Shown here piece by piece: positions 1 to 26,865 of a DNA stretch of 64,000 bases. How positions within the stretch are numbered: position 1 is the first letter of the stretch; each line of letters opens with the position of its first letter. The translations under genes and the position numbers were made by a program. Origin of the DNA: Ylistrum balloti (lineage: Eukaryota); NCBI RefSeq assembly GCF_031769215.1, contig NW_026782051.1, positions 496,001 through 560,000 on the forward strand, in the 5' to 3' direction. The notes below the pieces were generated by a model. That model had not been told where the DNA came from. It worked only from the letters and a program-made list of their open reading frames with translations, and did no database searches.

Positions 1-3000
1 CAGAGTATGAAACCGATACGTCCATATTGCTACTCGTTGGCAGAGATCTCATTTCGGCGCATCATGTGTTGGACCAGCGAACTGGACATGAACGTGAACC
101 ATATGCACAGAAATTAAAATTCGGTTGGGTAGTTGTAGGTGAATCGTGCCTAGGTCTCGTTCACAAACCTGCGGTCATAACTGTGAGCAAAACGGTCGTT
201 TTACCGGATGGCAGACCTACTCTCATGGATCCGTGTCCGAATTACTTCAAGGCTCAGTTTGAAAAATCCGATGATAAGTTGCCAATTGGAACGGTCATAT
301 TTCAGAGAACAAAATTCGATGATATTCCTGGTTACTCGCAACAGGATAAGGAATTCATGCGTGTCATGGAAGAGGAGTTTATTTAGGACGAGTACGGTAA
401 TTGGAGTGCATCGTTACCGCTAAAAAAGAACGACCTACTTTGTCAAACAATATGGATCAGGCAAGGCATCGCGCAGAAAATCTACGGAAGTCGTTACTGA
501 AAAATCCTACTAAGCGCGAACAGTTTTGTGCGTTTATGCAAAAATTTTTTGACAAGGAGCATGCAGAGGTAGCTCCCGAGTTACAAGACGGCGAGGAAGC
601 ATGGTATCTACCGATATTCGGGGTTTATCATTCCCAAAAACCCAACAAAATCCGAGTCGTGTTCGATTCGGCTGCAAAGTTTAATGGACATTCGCATAAC
701 GACATTCTCATGACAGGTCCGGATCTCATAAACAATTTGGTTGGTGTGTTAATGAAATTTAAGAAGGAACGAATTGCGATTATGGCCGATGTTGAACAGA
801 TGTTCTTCAACTTCTATGTACACAAGCGTGACAGAAACTTTCTACGTTTCATATGGTTTCAAGATAATGATCCCACACAACCGCTAAGGGAATTTCGTAT
901 GTGCGTGCATGTGTTTGGCAACTCGTCTTCTCTGTGTATCGCCACACTTGGATTAAGGAAATCTGCTTGAGATCATATCGATTCTTCCGCGTGCGACGAG
1001 GTGTGTTGTTTCGTCAAAGAGAGCTTCTACGTTGACGATGGATTGACCTCTGTATCTGACGAAGGTCACGCAGTGCAGTTGTTGAGAGACACTCAAGCTC
1101 GATTACAGCAAAACGGAAACATTCACTTGCACAAGTTCTCTTCGAACAGTGTTGATGTCTTAAGGCAGTCTCCAATAGAGTATACCAGCGAAATTTGCGA
1201 TATGGACTTCGATGATATTGTTCATAGGAGTCTCGGACTACGTTGGAAAGTCGGTTGTGATACGTTCACGTTTAGTGTTTCTGATGAGGCGAAACCGTTC
1301 ACCAAACGAGGCGTACTTTCTACAATACATAGTGTATTCGACCCCCTCGGCTTTGTGGCACCAGTTATTCTCGGAGGCAGACTATTAATGCGAAATGTGT
1401 TATCGTCAAAGGATCTCGACTGGGATGACCCTTTACCTCCGGACTTGAACTCTGATTGGAAGAAATGGAGGTCTTCGCTTAAAGATCTGGAACAGTTAGA
1501 AATTTCGAGATGTTACTCCAATTCGTCATTGAAAAAGGCAATTCGTCGTATTCTCAGACGCGGCAAAGGATGCTATAGGTGCAGTAGCATACATGAAAAT
1601 TTATGACGTACAGGAAAATGCTTCTGTTGGATACGTTCTTGGCAAATCGAAGGTAGCGCCTTCCCACGGACATACCATTCCAAGACTAGAACTGTGCGCG
1701 GCTGTTCTAGCTACTGAACTCGGTCTATTCATATCCGAACACGTCGATGTTGTGTTTGACGCCACCTACTACTATACCGACAGTCAGGTAGTACTAGGGT
1801 ATATATTTAACGACACGCGCCGTTTCTTCGTGTATGTTGCTAATCGGATTGACAAGATTCTGAAGTTATCTTCCAAACAGCAGTGGAGTTTTCGTGTCTA
1901 GTGAATGTAACCCTGCCGATAGTGCGACGAGGCCAATGCGTGCGAAAGACGTTGGAAAGCCAGTGTGGTTGAACGGACCCGTTGACATCATGAGTGATTT
2001 GCAAAGTTCGTATACAGACCAAGTATTTCCGTTGATCGGTAACGACGACAGTGAAATAACGTTCGTCAAGGAAACAAATGTCATGAAAACTCACGTTCGG
2101 AAGGACGTCGCTCTCGATTCTGACCGTTTCGCGAGATTTTCGTCATGGACTAGGTTGGTTAGTGCAATAACCTTACTGAAACAAGTCGCGCATCGTCATC
2201 ACAACGGAACAGACAATCCAGACGTGTTGCGTTTTGTTAACGATTCAAAGAACCTCATACTGAAGGTTGTTCAACAAGAGTTTTATTCGATGGAAATCGA
2301 CTGTTTACAGAAAGGACTGCCGTTAAACAGAAACAATTCTTTGTTGAAATTGTCGCCGTTTCTAGTCGACGAGGGGCTCCTGAGGATTGGTGGTAGGATT
2401 CAGAATAGTGACATTGACTTACCTGGAAAGGATCCGATCATTGTCCCAGCAAAACATCACGTGGCTACTCTAATCGTGAGACATCACGAGAAATCGGAAC
2501 ACCAAGGCCGACATATTACGGAGGGTAAAATACGTTCTTCTGGTTATTGGCTAGTGGGAGGAAAGCGATTAATTTCCTCTATTTTACATCACTGGGTCGT
2601 GTGCAGGAAACTCCGAGGAAATTTTGTGGAACTAAAATGTGTACTTTACCGAAGGCTCGTTTGACACTATGTCCGCCTTTCACTTACATTGAATTGGATG
2701 CGTTTGGGCCATGGAATGTGCGCGCGAGAAAAACTAGGGGAGGACAAGCTAACGCAAAACGTTGGGCTATAATATTCTGTTGCATGGTATCGAGAGGGAT
2801 ACATATTGAGGTCGTAGAGGAGATGAGCACATCTTCCTTCATTAACGCACTGCGGAGATTCATCGCGCTCAGAGGACGGTAAAGCACATTAGGTCGGACA
2901 AAGGATCTAACTTCGTAGGAGCCGTTAAGGAACTTAACTTGAATGTTATTGACGTCGAGGACAAAGCCGTGAAAGACTTTCTTTGAGAGGAAAGCATCAC

Positions 3001-3610
3001 ATGGACTTTTAATCCTCCATATGCCTCCCATATGGCCGGATCTTGGGAACGGCTTATTGGTACCGTTAGAAGGATTCTGGACAGCATGTTGCGTAATACT
3101 GACACTTTACATCTCACGCATGAAGTGCTTACGACTTTTCTAGCCGAAGCGTGTGCTATAGTGAACCAGCGACCACTGGTACCCGTATCTGACGACCCTG
3201 AAAACCCAGTGGTATTGTCGCCAAGTACACTTATTAAACAAAAGACTGACGTTCCAAATGTAGATCTAACCTTGGTAGACTTCTCAGTGAAAGACATGTT
3301 TCGATCCTAATGGCGATGTGTTCAGGTATTGGCCCAGAAATTTTGGAACGCGTGGAGAAGAGACTATCTACAATCGCTACAAACGCGACAAAAGTGGAAT
3401 CACGAACGTTCAAACTTGAAACAAGGTGACATTGTTTTGCTGAAGGATCATGACTCTCATCGTAATAACTGGCCAATGGGAATTGTTGAATGTGTTTTCC
3501 CTAGTCACGAAGGTCTTGTTCGTAAAGTCAGAGTTAAGACAATTCGTAATGGACGATCGGTTTCGTATATCCGTCCTATTACTCAGTTAGTATTATTGAT
3601 GGCAGAGTGA
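1..3610 (+). mobile_element. BEL/Pao LTR retrotransposon, internal pol region (RT, RNase H, integrase, C-terminal DUF5641-like domain), frameshifted and 5'-truncated by the window edge
   Basis: Consecutive ORFs carry Pao-type motifs: KIRVVFDSAAKFNG and ADVEQMF (401-970), FYVDDG (1001-), KSKVAP..TIPRLELCAA..YYTDSQVVL (RNase H, 1593-1901), integrase HHCC region then IELDAFGP...GSWERLIG, and QKFWNAWRRDYLQSLQTRQKW...WPMGIV (3329-3610). Many stops and frameshifts. Confidence 0.95.
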
Positions 3611-3776
3611 ATTATTGTGTTGAACATTGACAGCGATAAGTGAATTTTGTTGCTTAGAGACTTTAGTTGATTGTTATTCAGATAAGTTGTGATATTACAT
3701 ATTTTCATCGGGTTATAAATAATATGAATGTTTACAGGGTTTAAATGTAGTAGTGATTTAGCAATCAGGCGAGGAA

Positions 3777-4146
3777 TGTAGTGAAACGCTAGTTTTATAT
3801 TGTCTGTCCGCTCTAGTGTCAGGTCAGGGTTCAGAGTTCATTCTTTGTACGTCGTGGAAAAATGCATCATAGGATATGTTTACGTGAAAGTCCAAAGGAA
3901 ACAGACGTGCAAATTTGGCAAGGCTTATGTGACCCATGAGGTTGGGGCGCAAGCTAGGTGCAACATGGAACCCCTACACTGTGTTTGGGGTGATTATGGA
4001 CTATGGCTATAGGAACTAGGAACTTTGTATATGTAATAAAGGAACCAATTAAAGGTATTTAGAATCTGTATTTCGTTTGAACTCATTCGACATCAAATCT
4101 CGGACTTATTATTGTTAGATAGTCTTATCAGTCCTGTTTCGACACA
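3777..4146 (+). mobile_element. 3' LTR of the BEL/Pao element (about 370 bp), preceded by a polypurine tract
   Basis: Purine-rich CAGGCGAGGAA ends at 3776, directly followed by TGTAGTG at 3777. AATAAA occurs near 4035 and a plausible ACA terminus at 4144-4146. The right boundary is inferred because the 5' LTR lies outside the window. Confidence 0.65.
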
Positions 4147-4575
4147 AGACGTGAAAACGAAAGATAAAAAAAAATAGATTTAATACCAGATTATAGAGCT
4201 CGTGTTTCTGCTCATAAAGCTAAGCAACACGCAAATTGAAAATATTAAGACAATTCTCGTTCTAAGTTTTACACAAAAATTGATAGATCTAGCGTGTTTC
4301 TTTGACAACTATCATTATATATTTTCCGCTTTGTCATAGCAGTACAGTAAGGACCATTTCAATCGTTTTATCACAAAATTATTATTATTATTTGCTAAAA
4401 TCACTGGGTATGTCTTTGTTTGCAATTGCCATTTCTAGCCTTATAATATTGATAATCCAATATTTTTTATCATTGATGTATTATTTCATAGGACAGAACT
4501 AAAAAAAAATAATTATATGTCAGATGTAGGTTTTGAGTTGTCAGTCATGTTCACTAACATGGTTTTTGTATTTCA

Positions 4576-6158
4576 GTCAACATCAACAGCATCATCACAT
4601 TCATCATCCTTAAGTCAACATGATAGGGACAGTCCAACCTATGGAAGAGGTAGAGGTGGCAAGAGAAGAGGAAGAGGTGGCCATAGCAGAGGATGTGGAG
4701 TCCGAGAGACTCGGGGAAGAGGTCAAGAGACATCAGCAAGTAGACCTCGAGGCAGAGGGCGAGGAAGGGGAAGGACTAGAGGGACACGAGCAGACAGTGC
4801 TGTTGATGCCCTTCAACAAAGGAGGCAGACGTTAAGGGTTTGTATGGATTTTACATTAGGAGTACAATTCCTTTTTCAAACCAATTACAATATATATAAA
4901 CAGCAATGCAGGTTTTATGCCCCTAACATGAAGTTGCAACCTGGGCAAGTGCTGACACTTGCCATTTATTGCGTCTTCATTGGAAGAATGTATGGAATTA
5001 AAATGTGTATACATATGTAGTATGAAAAGATGTAGGTCAAGTTATCTGGTATGCTTTGTTTCTGTAATTCTTTTTTTCTCGAGTTTTCATTTTTCTACAA
5101 TATCTTCATTTTCTGAAAGCTTGATATTGGGACAGGGCACTACTGAAATATGAAATGTGACATTTTTGATGAGATACAGGACTAGTTAATGTATTGTTTA
5201 TAGTTGACCTATGTTTTATTGTTGTATTTGGCACTTGCAGAAAAAAATTCAGGAAACTCAATAAATGCTCATTTTCTCTGCACTGGATAGGGGCATAGCA
5301 TGGAAAGTTGATATGTAGTTGTATATTGTTTATATAAGTGTAGCAAATAACCACGTGTCACACCAACCTATACTGTATCTGATGTACAATGGGTATTACT
5401 GTATTTATTGGACATAGTTTAATAGTAATTTGCTAATAATACATTTGATTTTATATATATATATAGAACAGAGTTAATGAAATGGAGGCTGCAGATGCCA
5501 TGTCACTACTTTTGCGGGTAGTTGAACGCTTCTCGTCAATGGTCTTTGATCTTGTGGAAGATGCTGGAGCAGCTGGAAGTGGAGGATATCACCCACCACC
5601 CGGAGCAAATTCACCTCCTTGGTGCTCCTTTGGAAACTGCCGGGAAATGCCAACAGCGCCTGAACGCTTGTGTTGCAGGAAGGATCCAGCAAACTGCATA
5701 ACCAATCTGCCGGTAAGACCTAGTTTTATGTGATATAAATTCATCCCTTTATACTTCTTTCCAATAATTAGATTAATCCTTTGGTTTGGTTTGCGTTTTA
5801 CCTTTTTCAATGCAATTTGACTTCTTTGATCAGTTGATGACCTAAATAAATCTTAACATGCAGTATGCCTGGTCAAGTTACATTTTCTCCTCAGGACTTT
5901 CAAGTGTTGGTGTTGGATGAAGCGGTTTTGGCACTAGCAAGATTATACCGCCAGGATACGTTTGCCTTGCCAGAAGAGGAAGACTGGAACAAGGCAAATC
6001 GACATGCTGCATACAGACAATACATTTTTTGGCAGCTTGGTCGCCTAGGAACAGGTGATCGCCGCGTTATACCAAGTTGTGCCGTTTGGAAGATCCGAGA
6101 AAGGTATCCGGACCAATTTGGACAATACACTGGTTTTAAGGCTTCACGCTTGGCATAG
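4576..6158 (+). CDS. Spliced P2X7 cytoplasmic ballast-like (Zn-coordinating Cys domain) protein with an RG-rich N-terminal part; probable Kolobok accessory gene (KolX-like); 5' exon missing
   Basis: Exons about 4576-4835 (RGRGRG-rich), 5467-5713 (ends CCG|GTAAGA) and 5895-6158 (after TTCTCCTCAG). Spliced product: PPWCSFGNCREMPTAPERLCCRKDPANCITNLPDFQVLVLDEAVL...RHAAYRQYIFWQLG..RRVIPSCAVWKIRERYPDQFGQYTGFK. This matches my recollection of the P2X7 C-terminus (WCQCGSC..LCCRKKPGACIT..RHCAYRCY..ILPSCCRWRIRKEFP..GQYSGFK). Confidence 0.85.
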
Positions 6159-6288
6159 TTCTGGGCGTTTCGTTTTAAAAATAATGTTGTGATTGTTTTG
6201 ACATAACATACTTTGTGTGTACACAATGACAACAAATAAATCTTTTCATTTTATTGGATCGTTTTGTTTTATTTACTGTATTTATATA

Positions 6289-6464
6289 CAGTGTAACCTG
6301 TCTAAACCGGCCCCTGTGTAATCCGGATCACTTTCTATTTCGGCCTTATTGTTTGGTACTGGCATTTCAAAATCTTAGCAATAGTTACCTCTATAAACCG
6401 GACACCTGTATAAACCGACCAAACGTTTGTTCCTGATAGCATTTGGTTTAGAAAGGTTATAATG
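6289..6464. mobile_element. MITE (Tc1/mariner-type, TA target), 176 bp
   Basis: TA|CAGTGTAACCTGTCTAAACC at 6287 and an imperfect inverted copy GGTTTAGAAAGGTTATAATG|TA ending at 6466. Confidence 0.65.
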
Positions 6465-6749
6465 TATATATAAATTTTAAAAACTCTTTGCAAACTAATT
6501 TCATCAGTACATTTGTGGAATAATGATGATTATTGGTATGGATAACACATGAAGTACAATTTTGGTTTACAAATGCATTTCTTTACACAGACAACATTGA
6601 GAGAGAGTCCAATTGGACATGCACATAAACAAAATATCTATGAAGTGTTCATCCACAAGACACACAAGCTAAGTACAATACTATAACCTTTTCATTATCT
6701 GGACACAAAAGTAATTGTGAAGATCAGTTACTAGACTGCAATGGGGTGT

Positions 6750-6925
6750 GCTGATATCAATGGGTTAGGCTGATGACCATGGATTGTTGACATTACTGGG
6801 TTAGGCTGATGATCATGAAGTGTTGACATCAATGAGTTAGGCTGATGACCATGGAGTGTTGACATCAATGAGTTATGCTGATGACCATGGAGTGTTGACA
6901 TCAACTGGTTAGCGAGTGTTGACGT
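6750..6925. repeat. 36-bp tandem repeat, about 5 copies, between the two convergent Kolobok genes
   Basis: Unit approximately GAGTTAGGCTGATGACCATGGAGTGTTGACATCAAT; it generates the repetitive ORF 6731-6928. Confidence 0.9.
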
Positions 6926-8171
6926 CATCTTTATGTTTATTGAAGATAATTTTACTGTTGGACATCGTAAATGAATATTATAAGGACCAGTATCTTATAA
7001 CACTAAGGTTGAGGTAATATTAGGAATAAACATATGTACCATTACACAAAGACATCAATGTATGGACACATCAGGCTAGAAAATCAGGAGACAAAGTCTT
7101 GTATTTTTTTTTCCGTTCATTTTAAACGGGACCTTTTCTTTTCTACCAGCTGGGTGGTGGGGGAACATCAGCAAGAACCGCCGATATCCTTCTGGGATCT
7201 TTTGGGTCCAGGGGTTTTGGTTTTGACATTCCAGTTCGATCTGCAATTCTCTTCTGGACAATCAGATTGATGAGCCCCTGGATATGTGGGTACGTCTTTC
7301 CCACTTTGTATGGTACAACTGACCAACGGGCACGTTTTTTGTTGTATATCCTGTGGTACCTGTAAGAAATGCCAAAAATGAAAAAACATATTTTCCTACT
7401 GAAAATCAATGTTAATTTCAATCACTCAAGCAAACAAATTTCAGTAAAAATTTGCCAATCATATCGTAAAAATTACAGTGGTCATCTGGTAGCATGCAAA
7501 GGAAGCATTGTAAGATTTCTTGGTTTGATTGTTATGAATAATTTTAAAATATTTACCGGATGGAACCATCTTGGTTCTTCTGGATTTCTCTGTCAAGATG
7601 GGCATTGTAATCCAATGCTGCCAGGAAATTTCTTGCCCGATATACTGGAGGTGTATACGCAAATCTCTTACTGGCATACATAAGAATCAGTTGATGGAAA
7701 TTTTCCAGTTCGGCTGTACTTCTGGAAAGAATATAAAGATAAAGTAACAACACTAAATGTAAATCCATCCACATGTATGAAATAAATATTTTTGACAGAT
7801 GAACAATAGAGCATTTGTTATAATGTATCTCTCAATCACAGAGATTTCACCTAAAAGGTAGCTCTCATAGATCATGTCACCAATCATACGCAAAATACTG
7901 ACAGTAATAATAATCATAACGATACAAACCTGAAATTCAGGTAATATGGTATCTTGTTCAGAAATGGTTTGTACAGGACCAATTTCCGCAAGGTCACATG
8001 TGCATCAGTCCCTTTCTCCAAGTACCTTTGGTCACCTTCACCTGTAGTTAGAGGACCATGTGCACAATCTGTCACCCCTGAGTCTGTGTAGGGCACTGTC
8101 CAAGAATGCTCATCCACTACGTGATGAAGTATTCCACACCAGCTTCCCTGTTATAACAGACTTCATTATTA

Positions 8172-9691
8172 TACTCGGCGTCAATGAAAACGCAACACCT
8201 TTAAATTACTGTCAAAATTTACCAGTTATAGTTTTGAATACAATATTTAATAAAATACCTAAAAGTTGATTATGTCCATAACAAAATTCACTCAATGCAA
8301 TCAGCACTACATCATGGGAATACTTTGATTTCGGTGACTAATGTCCATACCCCCAAAATCAAAATTACCACGTTCAATATCTAATGTGGCCACCATTTGC
8401 AGCGACACAAGCGCGGCATCTTCGAGGCATAGACCGAATAAGGCGTTGAATTTTGATTTGAGGAATGTTCCCCCACTCTTCCTGAAGAGCGATTTCAAGC
8501 TGCCGACGCGTCTGGGGCTGTTGTGGTCGCTCTCTCACAGCCCTACCCAATTGGTCCCAAAGATGCTCGATCGGACTAAGATCCGGGGAAAACGCGGGCC
8601 ACGGAAGGGTTGCGATGTTCTGATGTTGACGGTAGTCTGTAGTGATACGAGCGGTATATGGTCGTGCATTGTCCTGTTGTAATAACGCTACGTTTGGGTG
8701 TCCAGCAAAGAATGGAACAACAGCAGGAGTTAAGACCTCGTTGATGTAGCGCTGTGCTGTTAGATTGCCGTCAATAATTACTAGAGGGGTACGGTATGCA
8801 AAAGAGATACCTCCCCACACCATCACACTGCCGCCGCCCCACCTATCCGTTTCCGTTACACAGCAGTCCAAAAACTTTTCACCTCGACGTCGCCACACTC
8901 GAATTCTATCGTCATTTCCTCTGAGGCGGAATCTCGATTCGTCGGTGAACAGGACGCCAGCCCACCGACGTTGGGTCCATCCTCGGCGCTGTCTTGTCCA
9001 ATTTAGATGATTTTGACGGCGAATTTGAGTCAATTCGTTTCCTCTAAATGGACGGCGCGACGCCAATCCGGTTGTGCGAAGGCGACGGCGCACAGTAATA
9101 GCTGACAAACGTCTGCCATGACTTCCTATCGTCTGTCTAGCCGTTCTTGTCGCGGTTTGAAAACGATCTCGCAGGTGACTTAGTCGAATGTAACGGTCCT
9201 GGTTTGGCGTCGTCACTCTGTCGCCCCGGACGAGGTCGATCTCTCACGGATCCGGTTTGTCGCACTCGTTCTGCCAGTCGATTGATTGTGGAAGCAGAAC
9301 AACCCATTCTCCTGGCAACTTCCATCTGAGAAAGCCCTCCTGCCAGCATACCCCGAGCTTCGTGTCTTTCATTGTCTGTCAGTCGAGGCATTTGTAGCAA
9401 ATAATGATGACAATTTAAAAGATTGATGACGGAAAAAGTCTGTAACTACAGTGTTCACTAGTAGTGACTGAGCAAGGATATAACGCACTTTAGAGCGCCG
9501 ACGTGCAAACTCATACTTTTACGACAATGCCCTGTGGTACGACAAGGAGTTGATATTACTCGACCATTATTTCGTTAGTTTTGTAGTGCATTGTGTTGTG
9601 GCTAAATACAGCAGAATAAGAATCTAATCCTTGTTGTGAAGAATATGTTATGTCCAAAATTTTAGTGTTGCGTTTTCATTGGCGCCGAGTA
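8172..9691 (-). mobile_element. Tc1/mariner element, 1520 bp, full length, inserted in a Kolobok transposase intron
   Basis: 27-bp TIRs TACTCGGCG(T/C)CAATGAAAACGCAACAC with one mismatch; TA duplication at 8170-8171 and 9692-9693. Confidence 0.95.
8374..9391 (-). pseudogene. Tc1-family (DD34E-type) transposase with one frameshift near 9215
   Basis: MPRLTDNER..HTH..RPRPGRQ, then a frame change to TTPNQDRYIRL..VLFTDESRF..LLQQDNARPY..SPDLSPIEHLWD; the catalytic D, D and E are retained. Confidence 0.93.
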
Positions 9692-9887
9692 TATTACACT
9701 ATATAATAATGCAACAGTATGTTTTATTTGAAATAAACACATCCTGATAGGATAAAGAATTTTTTATACAACTAAGCAGACCAATACTTCACCTCTTTAC
9801 ATTTTGATACACCATAACATACTAATATGTATATCAGGTATCCCTATTCTCCCAATGACAGTAGCTATATAATAATTGACATATGAA

Positions 9888-10320
9888 AATATCTGGACGC
9901 CGTGTTCTATTTCACTGATAATAACTGCTTTTGATTCTTGAAAAAGACGCTCTAGAGTGTCATCCCAGCAAAATGAAGTTCCAGGTTTGAGCAGTTGTCT
10001 GAATGCTTGCATCCTTTCAGTCATGCTGAATGCATATGACACTTGATTTACAAGGCCGAACCAAGATATCATATCAGTTATGTTCTTAGGTGAAGGGAAG
10101 TCCAGAATTGCTTCAAGATAACGGCTGCATGGTCGCACACTGTCACGAGTAATTTCAAAGCCAGCAAACAGAACAGTATCTTTTGCAAACACAAATTTGT
10201 CTGGATTCAGAATGATATCATTTTTTCCACAGGTTTCTAGCCAATTGCACGATTGAAAGAAACTTTGCTTGATACTGTCCGACCAAGGAAGAGCATCATC
10301 TATACACTTTGTTTTGATCA
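9888..10320 (-). mobile_element. Gypsy/Ty3 reverse transcriptase fragment without LTRs
   Basis: KCIDDALPWS..ILNPDKFVFAKDTVLFAGFEI..FPSPKNITDMISWFGLVNQVS..LLKPGTSFCWDD, i.e. RT palm-thumb sequence. Confidence 0.85.
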
Positions 10321-11430
10321 GAAATGACAGACAGTTCTGGAGGCGACGTTTAAATGTGGATTGGCTAAAGATTTTGCAGCTTCAGCTTCATACGTACCTC
10401 CATCATAGGTAAGTAGGCCGATACTATTTTCAGATAACTTTATTATCCAAAATGATGGAGGTCTGAAACATACAAAAAGTAACATTGTAAATAAAATCAA
10501 CTATCTGTTGGTAAGACATAAGTAATAGACTAACAAATAAATACATAATCCTCTAATATATGTATATCATATAATACATGTAGAGTATGTATTCACATAA
10601 CTCAACCTTATTAGAAAGACACAAACACAAAGAACAATTTCAGGGGCTAGACTTGTTGTGTCTGACAATTTAAAAATTGTGTGAAAATGACATACATTCC
10701 CTCATAATCTAAGCCTAAAAATATCATAATGACTGTAATTTTTAGTGTCTATGATCAATTTATTTTGATACAAATAAAAGACAACATATATCAAATCATG
10801 AATGTATCTTGGTATGGACTAATTGACCTGTATTATTACGTCATAATTAAACAATTACCTCAATGTGGTGTCACGACTGGGTCCCGCTGGTTGGTCGGCT
10901 CTCGCGATCGTAGTTTCATAACTGTATAACGAGATGACACACTTTGAACATGTATTTTAAAAAACCCGCAAAATTTACGTTCGCTTTTAGCTTAATTGCT
11001 GTAATAAAAACCCTACATTCAGAATTCCCCATTGGGTGCCCTATTTCTCTTTCACATTCACTGATTCAGACCCATGGAGGCCAATATTGACAGATTTCGG
11101 TTGTGTACAGGCCTTCAGTATCTTTCATTAATTGCATATCGACATCCATTACTTATACATTAAGTAATTAAAATGCTCCACTTTGGCTTATCGGCTATTT
11201 AATTTATGAAACTTCAAAGTGAATTGACTGTCTGAACTAACCTGTCAAGTAGCACCTTGGCAAACTGTGCATCTGATTTGCTCCCCTGGCTTTCTTTCAG
11301 CTTTTGCCATCTGTCTGTCATGTCCTCCAAGTAAATTCTCGTCCAAGCAAAGTTCAATTCACGCATTCTTTTCCTTTCTTTCCCTGTGCTTTCAGTTAAG
11401 CGAGTCTTAGGACCCCTTCGCTTCGGTCTA

Positions 11431-11483
11431 GAGTCCGCCATCTTTGTTATGATTTCTGAATTTTCCCGCATCGCGCATGCGCA
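11431..11483 (-). promoter_or_regulatory. Putative internal promoter of the Kolobok transposase: NRF1-type palindrome plus YY1-like start context
   Basis: GCGCATGCGC at 11473-11482, about 30 bp upstream of AAAGATGGCG, which contains the ATG at 11441. Motif match only. Confidence 0.35.
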
Positions 11484-11799
11484 AAGACATTGTTTACACT
11501 TTCCGAACAATAATGATATGAATTAGTATTGGGTCATTCCTATTTATTTTTATTTTTTTTTGTTTTTTGTTTTTCAAAAAATGGTTTTGCAAACTTTTGA
11601 ATTTCATAATTAACAGAAAGTGCATAACTTTCAACATACTTTTAAATGTTATAACATGTTTTACCGGTTATGAAATGAAAATCTAACCATTTAGTCCCTT
11701 TAACACAAGATATTGAAATGGTACGTCATAGTCTATTATATAGACCAACATATTTCAGGTAATGTAGAATTTTACAAATCTCAACAGTTTCAAAAGGGA

Positions 11800-12740
11800 T
11801 TTTAGACATGTAATGTTACGATAAAAACGTTCTCGAGTAGACAGAAGGTCACTGCAGTCCAATAAAAAAATGTTGAACGGTGAATGGTTCATCACATCCT
11901 ATGCACCAAGGATGATCTTCGCCTTTTAACATATATGAATGTGTAAGGGCAAGGACAACTTCGTCTCGGTAGTTGTCTCTATAGCCTGGAGACCATTCAC
12001 CGATAACAGGTTTAACGGAGTGCAATTTGTTATTGGTAAAGGTATTCCAATCCTCCTGCCACTGAGCTTTTAAAATTTGTTTAATGAATGGTTTAAAATC
12101 GGTAAGATGAAGTTTAAAAACAAGTGGTAGCAATAAAGATGTCTTTGCGGCACGATCTGCTTTTTCATCGCCTGGTATTCCCATTTGCACAGGAACCCAG
12201 CAAAAAGCAATACGAAAGTTAAAAGCAAGTTCATTATATAGCATTAAGGTATTTCTAATGAAAATATTTTCGATATATCTATTGCTAAGAGTTTGTATAA
12301 CAGAAAGAGAGTCTGAATGGATAACAACTCTCATAACTTTATTTCTTTGAATATATTCAAGGGCGAGGTAGATAGCTCGCGCTTCTGCCGAGATTATTGA
12401 GGCGTTGTTCGGCAGCCGGCATCCATAGGTTTCATCTTGTGTAACCATGGCCGCAGCAACTTTATCATTATCTTTTGGAGCATCAGTAAATAAATATAGA
12501 AATGTTTTCTATTTTATCTGCAATTTCCAGAAGGATGAACGAAACGTGTACCTGTTTGTGTCTGATTAAACCATCTCATGAAGTGAAAAGTCAAGTTCAG
12601 GTGAATTCATGAGCCAGGGTGGAATCTCTATCTTCCCAAATGACTGAATTTGGTTAACAAAAGTATCAACAGCATGTGTCCTAGAGCAACAGTCGAACAA
12701 AGCATTTCATACATTATGGGGCTGCTGCACCTCCCTGTCT
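11800..12740 (-). mobile_element. 3' fragment of an RNase H-bearing non-LTR retrotransposon (I-group, e.g. I/Nimb-like)
   Basis: FTDAPK..CRLPNNASIISAEARAIYLAL..IHSDSLSVIQ..CWVPVQMGIPGDEKADRAAK (RNase HI), followed by a terminal C-x2-C..H knuckle (WCIGCDEPFTVQH). Confidence 0.88.
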
Positions 12741-26660: not shown

Positions 26661-26865
26661 NNNNNNNNNNNNNNNNNNNNNNNNNNNNNNNNNNNNNNNN
26701 NNNNNNNNNNNNNNNNNNNNNNNNNNNNNNNNNNNNNNNNNNNNNNNNNNNNNNNNNNNNNNNNNNNNNNNNNNNNNNNNNNNNNNNNNNNNNNNNNNNN
26801 NNNNNNNNNNNNNNNNNNNNNNNNNNNNNNNNNNNNNNNNNNNNNNNNNNNNNNNNNNNNNNNNN
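26661..26865. other. Assembly gap (205 N)
   Basis: Run of N bases. Confidence 1.

Follow-up and report, generated by a model that had tools for sequence, protein, structure and literature searches.

Kolobok DNA transposons follow the rule of a TTAA target and termini of the form 5'-RR ... YY-3', and the KolX protein of their Kol0 lineage resembles residues 476–595 of P2X7 and folds like the ballast (Kojima & Bao 2022, Mob DNA 13:24, PMC9587614). In the same paper, the ballast-like proteins that Rump et al. had described in 2020 (PMC7016195) were assigned to Kolobok transposons, P2X7 was proposed to stem from the fusion of KolX to a P2X4-like gene, and nanor was considered to be probably a domesticated KolX. 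In rat P2X7, guanosine diphosphate (GDP) is bound by R546, H547, R574, R578 and K583 (PMC7016195). Molluscs are missing from the published list of Kol0 hosts (PMC9587614), although ZCD proteins had already been described from oyster and limpet (PMC7016195); our literature search found no paper treating KolX besides PMC9587614. Here we describe a KolX gene and the remains of a Kolobok transposase in a 64-kb stretch of DNA from the bivalve Ylistrum balloti (contig NW_026782051.1; hereafter the window). The region very probably represents a Kol0-lineage Kolobok copy that has been rearranged and is dead. A sequence-only reading of the window had proposed a two-gene Kolobok element carrying the P2X7 ballast and had suspected that the link between KolX and the ballast might already be in print. 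This is the case (PMC9587614); since the ballast as a transposon-borne module captured by a P2X4-like gene was published in 2022, the locus adds only one more, decayed, mollusc example.

The locus shares with the Kol0 elements (Kolobok-1_XT, -1_SKow, -1_BF and -1_NV; Repbase) a 5'-RR terminus, flanked by TTAA at its one visible end; their transposase is of the DDD/E type, and the window remnant has the same CxxH motif and the final E in its LENFH context. The KolX proteins have in common the ballast Cys pattern WCxCxxC..CC..C..SC, and window KolX carries PSCAVW as in Kolobok-1_BF2p and, like Kolobok-1_SKow and P2X7, has a short CC-to-C spacing. In contrast to these elements, the window copy has lost the D-D exons, shows no left end and contains nested insertions, and its KolX has a long arginine/glycine (RG)-rich arm, which goes unmentioned in Kojima & Bao 2022. 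Compared with the P2X7 ballast (ZCD; PDB 6U9V/6U9W, 9E3M), window KolX is ~35–39% identical over ~120 residues and has the Cys cluster, but is free-standing, with no fusion to a channel. The fish nanor and nanor-like ZCD proteins are also small and essentially a ballast domain; nanor, however, belongs to the host and is expressed at the midblastula transition, whereas the window gene is embedded in what is left of a transposon and appears to be decaying neutrally. In its intact form, the element would have comprised two convergent spliced genes between TTAA-flanked 5'-AG termini, one coding for a DDD/E transposase and the other for a KolX of ~260 amino acids (aa), made up of a disordered arm (Ser/RG-rich), a long helical segment and a Zn-cysteine ballast that is homologous to the C-terminus of P2X7.

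The KolX gene and its RG-rich arm

In line with the earlier recognition of a spliced plus-strand gene with a product like the P2X7 tail, two plus-strand open reading frames (ORFs; 5482–5733 and 5865–6158) matched the Pfam family P2RX7_C (PF20478) with E-values of 5.9e-08 and 1.4e-23, respectively, the profile matches (33.3 and 84.3 bits) both lying above the gathering cut-off of 23.5. Among solved structures, exon C matched P2X7 residues 513–593 (E = 1.2e-13) and exon B residues 468–509 (E = 6e-4), and the strings quoted for the resemblance, LCCRKDPANCIT and GQYTGFK, are both present. The gene is predicted to consist of four plus-strand exons (0, A, B and C; Table 1), which join to encode 259 aa through introns that are all of phase 0 with GT..AG junctions. 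Because no RNA run matched the stretch (the single matching run, X1, consists of genomic contigs), the splice sites are predictions from the sequence. The first intron measures 51 nt (4526–4576, GTAGGT..CACTAAC..TTTCAG), and the mature N-terminus that results, MSDSTSTASS, resembles the MESDTSSTSS of P0078 and the MESEVSESESD of full-length bivalve relatives; the annotated Ostrea edulis gene P0079 provides a parallel to exon 0, with 'ME', an intron and then the RG exon. This complete start (ATG 4517 plus the 51-nt intron) lies downstream of a BEL/Pao retrotransposon, so no exon beyond the retrotransposon is required, and the first exon that had been sought there is no longer needed. A shorter model from ATG 5482, as in some NCBI models (P0006, P0007), was rejected in favour of the long one, because the tail motif of exon A and its donor are conserved and because the RG arm is found in longer bivalve proteins and in mRNA-like contigs.

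The RG-rich extension noticed before proved to be a genuine conserved exon. Apart from exon A, none of the six reading frames of the window contains an RG-dense open stretch, and an RG-dense ORF was found 0.5–2 kb upstream of the ballast exons in all five families examined (window, Argopecten, Ostrea, Ylistrum and a family from ENA assemblies, the ENA family). The non-repetitive tail of exon A is conserved (ADSAVDALQQRRQTLR in the window, NEAVSSLEQSRQTME in Argopecten, TTDAEVALEERRRNIE in Ostrea and RADEAEEAVVQMEQNLE in the ENA family), as is the phase-0 donor that follows it, and the Argopecten annotation has the identical exon A/B junction. Nine bivalve proteins of 233–291 aa, including NCBI models from Ostrea, Crassostrea and Saccostrea, carry the RG arm, helix and ballast in one chain; the three main exons of window KolX tile onto these proteins without overlap, with exon A aligning to their N-termini. 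The ORF of P0078 (702 nt) runs uninterrupted on 1.4–1.6-kb Logan contigs, which is the appearance expected of spliced mRNA. Judged from these alignments, bivalve KolX has the RG-rich arm as a conserved exon. This is the one modest addition to what is known, and the four-exon gene model that displays it is of modest practical use.

In the AlphaFold model of the close relative P0077, residues 1–80 are disordered and are followed by a long helix (81–106), two further helices and a confident Cys-rich/helical domain. A Foldseek search of the PDB with this model returned P2X7 structures only (14 matches, probability 1.00, ~120 columns, root-mean-square deviation ~3.4 Å). Window KolX itself, with its best matches in Pectinidae (70–79%), keeps 32 of the 33 columns that are conserved to at least 90% among relatives. 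The sole exception is a Phe in place of the second Cys of WCxCxxC (C479 in P2X7), which leaves six of the seven Zn-site cysteines; the loss probably impairs the Zn site of the copy, and the assignment to the ballast fold stands. When aligned with P2X7, the equivalents of the GDP ligands R546, H547 and R578 are kept, R574 and K583 are replaced by Val and Asp, and C573 is absent, as in many KolX proteins.

KolX in active elements would most likely be an accessory factor of transposition, the ballast of which would bind Zn and, given the kept ligand equivalents, perhaps a guanine nucleotide; the RG arm would give nucleic-acid binding or nuclear targeting. The narrower proposal, that the disordered RG/RGG-rich arm and the conserved helix behind it form a functional nucleic-acid-binding or nuclear-targeting module, is put forward tentatively and is at present the less probable case. 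If true, bivalve KolX would be a DNA/RNA-binding accessory factor of Kolobok transposition with the ballast as its Zn/guanine-nucleotide-regulated partner, and the ballast fold, so far without a function, would gain a testable ancestral role.

Transposase remnant, termini and the two-gene unit of relatives

The minus-strand transposase gene that had been proposed to converge on KolX is real but survives only as a remnant, consisting of exon 1 and the last three exons (Table 1). The three C-terminal exons matched the transposase gene beside KolX in every relative's locus, the tblastn targets of the last exon being the transposase genes of Argopecten, Ostrea, Ylistrum and the ENA family. By eye, the window motifs WCGILHHVVDEHSW...DCAHGPLT and TAELENFHQ line up with WRSLLYHIANKHTF...KCQHKKIT...TGDLENFHS of Kolobok-1_XT1p (Data S5, PMC9587614). 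Kolobok identity is supported by these CxxH and LENFH motifs, as in Kolobok-1_XT, together with the TTAA/AG terminus described below, as far as sequence comparison goes; Pfam searches with the transposase pieces gave no match or only sub-threshold ones (DUF713, DUF5645). Relatives carry upstream exons with the pattern 'GDGRMDSPG...VVTDAH', which contains the first two D residues of the Kolobok transposase signature (D, D, C/DxxH, E), and nothing similar to these D-D exons or to the zinc-finger exons of relatives is left in the window. Since the catalytic D-D part is gone, the locus is not the intact two-gene element that had been envisaged.

Exon 1 matched neither Pfam nor any target of a word search, and an exhaustive search yielded 26 weak matches. 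P0068 joins the exon-1 motif (E = 2e-12) to a 'VGSALYLKW' region homologous to the next Argopecten transposase exon (E = 2e-7), and in the Ostrea locus L016 the homologue of the exon sits upstream of the transposase exons within the repeated unit. Taken together, this linkage and this position identify the open frame as transposase exon 1. The same N-terminal motif (RW..LK...D.EFAK.LLD) was also seen at residues 639–692 of P0051, a large C2H2 zinc-finger protein of 1058 aa, which could reflect either domestication of a fragment or a fusion in the gene model.

The terminus reported earlier is present. Read on the plus strand, it is CCATTTAGTCCCT/TTAA (the slash marks the element boundary, here 11699/11700–11703), which on the element strand is TTAA/AGGGACTAAATGGTTAG; its start, 5'-AGGGAC, agrees with the 5'-RR rule at this one end. 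It is identical at 20 of 21 positions to the right terminus of the Pecten maximus locus L013, with homology running over ~126 bp. L013 is a 6.5-kb internally deleted element with TTAA/AGGGACTAT at both ends (8826 and 15363) and a KolX inside, and this KolX is the one most similar to that of the window (79% in exon C). The left end of the ENA family, TTAA/AGATGATC, was fixed by four copies with unrelated flanks (L004–7), and that of the Ostrea loci L016/L017, TTAA/AGGCCCACTATGAC, by comparison of the copies. The copy comparison in these two multicopy families places KolX inside a TTAA-bounded mobile unit. Left ends of related families (TTAA/AGATGATC, TTAA/AGGCCCAC and TTAA/AGGGACTAT) likewise adjoin unrelated flanks, and TTAA/AG termini were found in four families. 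Convergent KolX and transposase genes were observed in 11 of the 11 related loci analysed (seven families). The naming of the ballast-domain gene as KolX thus stands, resting on the domain, its convergent position beside a Kolobok transposase, the recurrence of this layout and the TTAA-bounded units of the multicopy families.

A search of the window with 17-mers and up to three mismatches for the left terminal inverted repeat (TIR) recovered the right end only, scoring of every window TTAA against the right terminus brought no recognisable left end, and the left end of L013 scored below shuffles when compared with 3600–4700. The candidate TTAA/AGGTATTTAG at 4049–4053 was rejected because it ranked 96th among the 952 TTAA sites of the window. 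In relatives, the left end lies 0.3–0.8 kb upstream of KolX, a spacing that leads one to expect it where the BEL/Pao element now sits; the earlier expectation that it lies beyond that element is reasonable. No second copy of the transposon was found within the window.

With the middle of the transposase gone and a retroelement-like fragment in its place, DNA continuity between the two halves of the locus cannot be shown, and the region could represent two unrelated partial Kolobok copies that came to lie side by side, one at 10.45–11.7 kb (right terminus and exon 1) and the other at 4.5–8.15 kb (KolX and transposase 3' exons). We consider such a juxtaposition very unlikely, given that the parts follow one another in precisely the order and orientation found in intact relatives (L016) and that in L013 a terminus of the same type and the KolX closest to that of the window belong to one 6.5-kb unit.

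Among the relatives, the Ostrea edulis loci L016/L017 are 99.6% identical to each other and contain a four-exon KolX (P0079) and a convergent transposase that is matched by exon 1 and the three C-terminal exons of the window; from their sequences, these copies look young and are possibly active. The ENA family (L003–L007 and L009–L012, assemblies ERZ25073280 and ERZ25073285) comprises Kolobok copies with KolX that are 99% identical over >24.7 kb; they start at the left end given above, their right end was not reached, and they are unusually long for Kolobok, which may be due to nested elements or cargo. These young, apparently intact relatives would be better material for studying KolX function than the window copy. 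In Argopecten irradians, the annotation of a hexosaminidase gene (Glyco_hydro_20) extends across a Kolobok copy with KolX (L001). The RG run of this copy and the conserved tail stand in different reading frames, and this may be why the protein was annotated with its start at an 'ME' within the tail.

Decay of the window copy

Contig depth in X1 was ~10–25 over KolX and the transposase remains, compared with ~199 over the long terminal repeat (LTR) of the BEL/Pao element and ~700 over a nested Tc1/mariner element, and heterozygous indels occurred at half depth; the low, half-split depth indicates that the element is single-copy at at least 90% identity. The X1 version is ~2.5% diverged from the window. 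Among the differences listed (40 of 130), the KolX coding sequence showed 14 non-synonymous and 6 synonymous changes (ratio ~0.8), one of them a change from E to a stop codon at 6099. Along with the loss of the invariant Cys and the gutted transposase, the X1 stop and non-synonymous changes point to a relic in neutral decay and not to a domesticated gene. The copy would be unable to transpose by itself, and its KolX appears to be a decaying passenger, not a host gene.

Several observations weigh against this reading. The KolX frame of the window is fully open and the conserved positions are kept but for one, so KolX may have lost its function only recently or may have kept it to this day. The X1 counts cover 40 of the 130 differences, and X1 could come from a close relative and not from the same species. 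With the left terminus unseen, the unity of the element is deduced from order, orientation and the Pecten relative.

Part of this evidence would also be expected if window KolX were a domesticated host gene, comparable to nanor, that outlived its transposon under selection: the KolX ORF has survived intact over four exons beside a ruined transposase, contig depth speaks for a single copy, all but one of the 33 conserved positions persist, and a domesticated KolX has been proposed before (PMC9587614). Such a gene would, however, hardly have exchanged an invariant Zn ligand for Phe, and the premature stop and the ratio of ~0.8 among the X1 differences listed, the terminus and transposase remnants that still flank KolX and the lack of any RNA run matching the stretch all speak against domestication, which we regard as highly improbable. 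Equally little credence is given to the idea that the element could still be mobilised as a non-autonomous Kolobok by proteins supplied in trans from intact copies elsewhere, with a functional KolX. The well-preserved right terminus and the open KolX frame would fit this idea, but at least 4 kb of BEL sequence separate KolX from any left terminus, and the single-copy state at at least 90% identity, the lost Cys and the nested insertions argue against it.

Nested and neighbouring elements

The window is AT-rich eukaryotic DNA dense in mobile elements, and those in or next to the Kolobok copy are listed with its own parts in Table 1.

Table 1. Coordinates of the Kolobok copy and of adjoining and inserted elements in the window.
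Feature	Position	Strand	Remarks
BEL/Pao LTR retrotransposon	1..4096	+	pol (with frameshifts) and 3' LTR; adjoins or interrupts the element on its KolX side
KolX exon 0	4517..4525	+	ATG TCA GAT (MSD); splice signals predicted from sequence
KolX exon A	4577..4837	+	Ser-rich part, RG-rich arm (52% R+G), conserved tail motif
KolX exon B	5467..5712	+	Helical linker and first Cys cluster WCSFGNC..LCCRKDPANC; Pfam and P2X7 structure matches
KolX codon TTT (Phe) replacing second Cys of WCxCxxC	5629..5631	+	Cys in 67/67 aligned relatives
KolX exon C	5895..6158	+	Helices with R-H..Y and PSC motifs, GQYTGFK; TAG stop at 6156–6158
36-bp tandem repeat, ~5 units	6748..6927		Spacer between KolX stop and transposase stop
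Kolobok transposase last exon	7143..7421	-	Open frame with stop codon, acceptor not fixed; tblastn E 1e-11 to 1e-20
Transposase exon with last catalytic glutamate (TAELENFHQ)	7556..7720	-	tblastn 58–76% identity to relatives
Transposase exon with CxxH motif (WCGILHHVVDEHSW..DCAHGPLT)	7917..8150	-	Matches to relatives and Kolobok-1_XT1p
Nested Tc1/mariner	8172..9693	-	TIRs at 8167–8198 and 9665–9696 (32 nt), TA flanks; DDE_3 and HTH_Tnp_Tc3_2
Retrotransposon pol-like fragment	9800..10381	-	194-aa open frame; Ty3/gypsy-like reverse transcriptase C-terminal pattern by eye
Kolobok transposase exon 1	11217..11441	-	Basic N-terminus, motif RIYL..RW..LK...SDAQFAKVLLD
Right terminus AGGGACTAAATGGTTAG (5'-AG) and flanking TTAA (11700–11703)	11683..11703	-	Matches right end of Pecten L013

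The BEL/Pao element was recognised by a Peptidase_A17 match ('Pao retrotransposon peptidase', E = 3e-20), its pol being split over many ORFs. No second LTR copy was found in the window for fixing its boundary; contig depth (~199 at 3900–4043, then ~24) and contig starts place the approximate 3' boundary closer to 4044–4097 than to 4147. One 731-nt contig of X1 agrees with the window from 4097 onwards only, its first 479 nt failing to match the BEL LTR; this contig may represent an allele without the BEL insertion that carries the missing Kolobok left end.

The place of the missing transposase exons is occupied by the Tc1/mariner element and the pol-like fragment. The former contains an intact transposase ORF of 280 aa (8374–9216) and is absent from an X1 contig that joins 8172 directly to ~9696, which indicates a young insertion; with the high contig depth noted above, the family looks young, polymorphic and possibly active. 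The label of the pol-like fragment is tentative because Pfam gave no match. An ORF resembling RNase H / RVT_3 (11849–12448, minus strand) lies immediately past the right end of the Kolobok copy and is probably the 3' part of a non-LTR retrotransposon; a run of N occupies 26661–26865 of the window.

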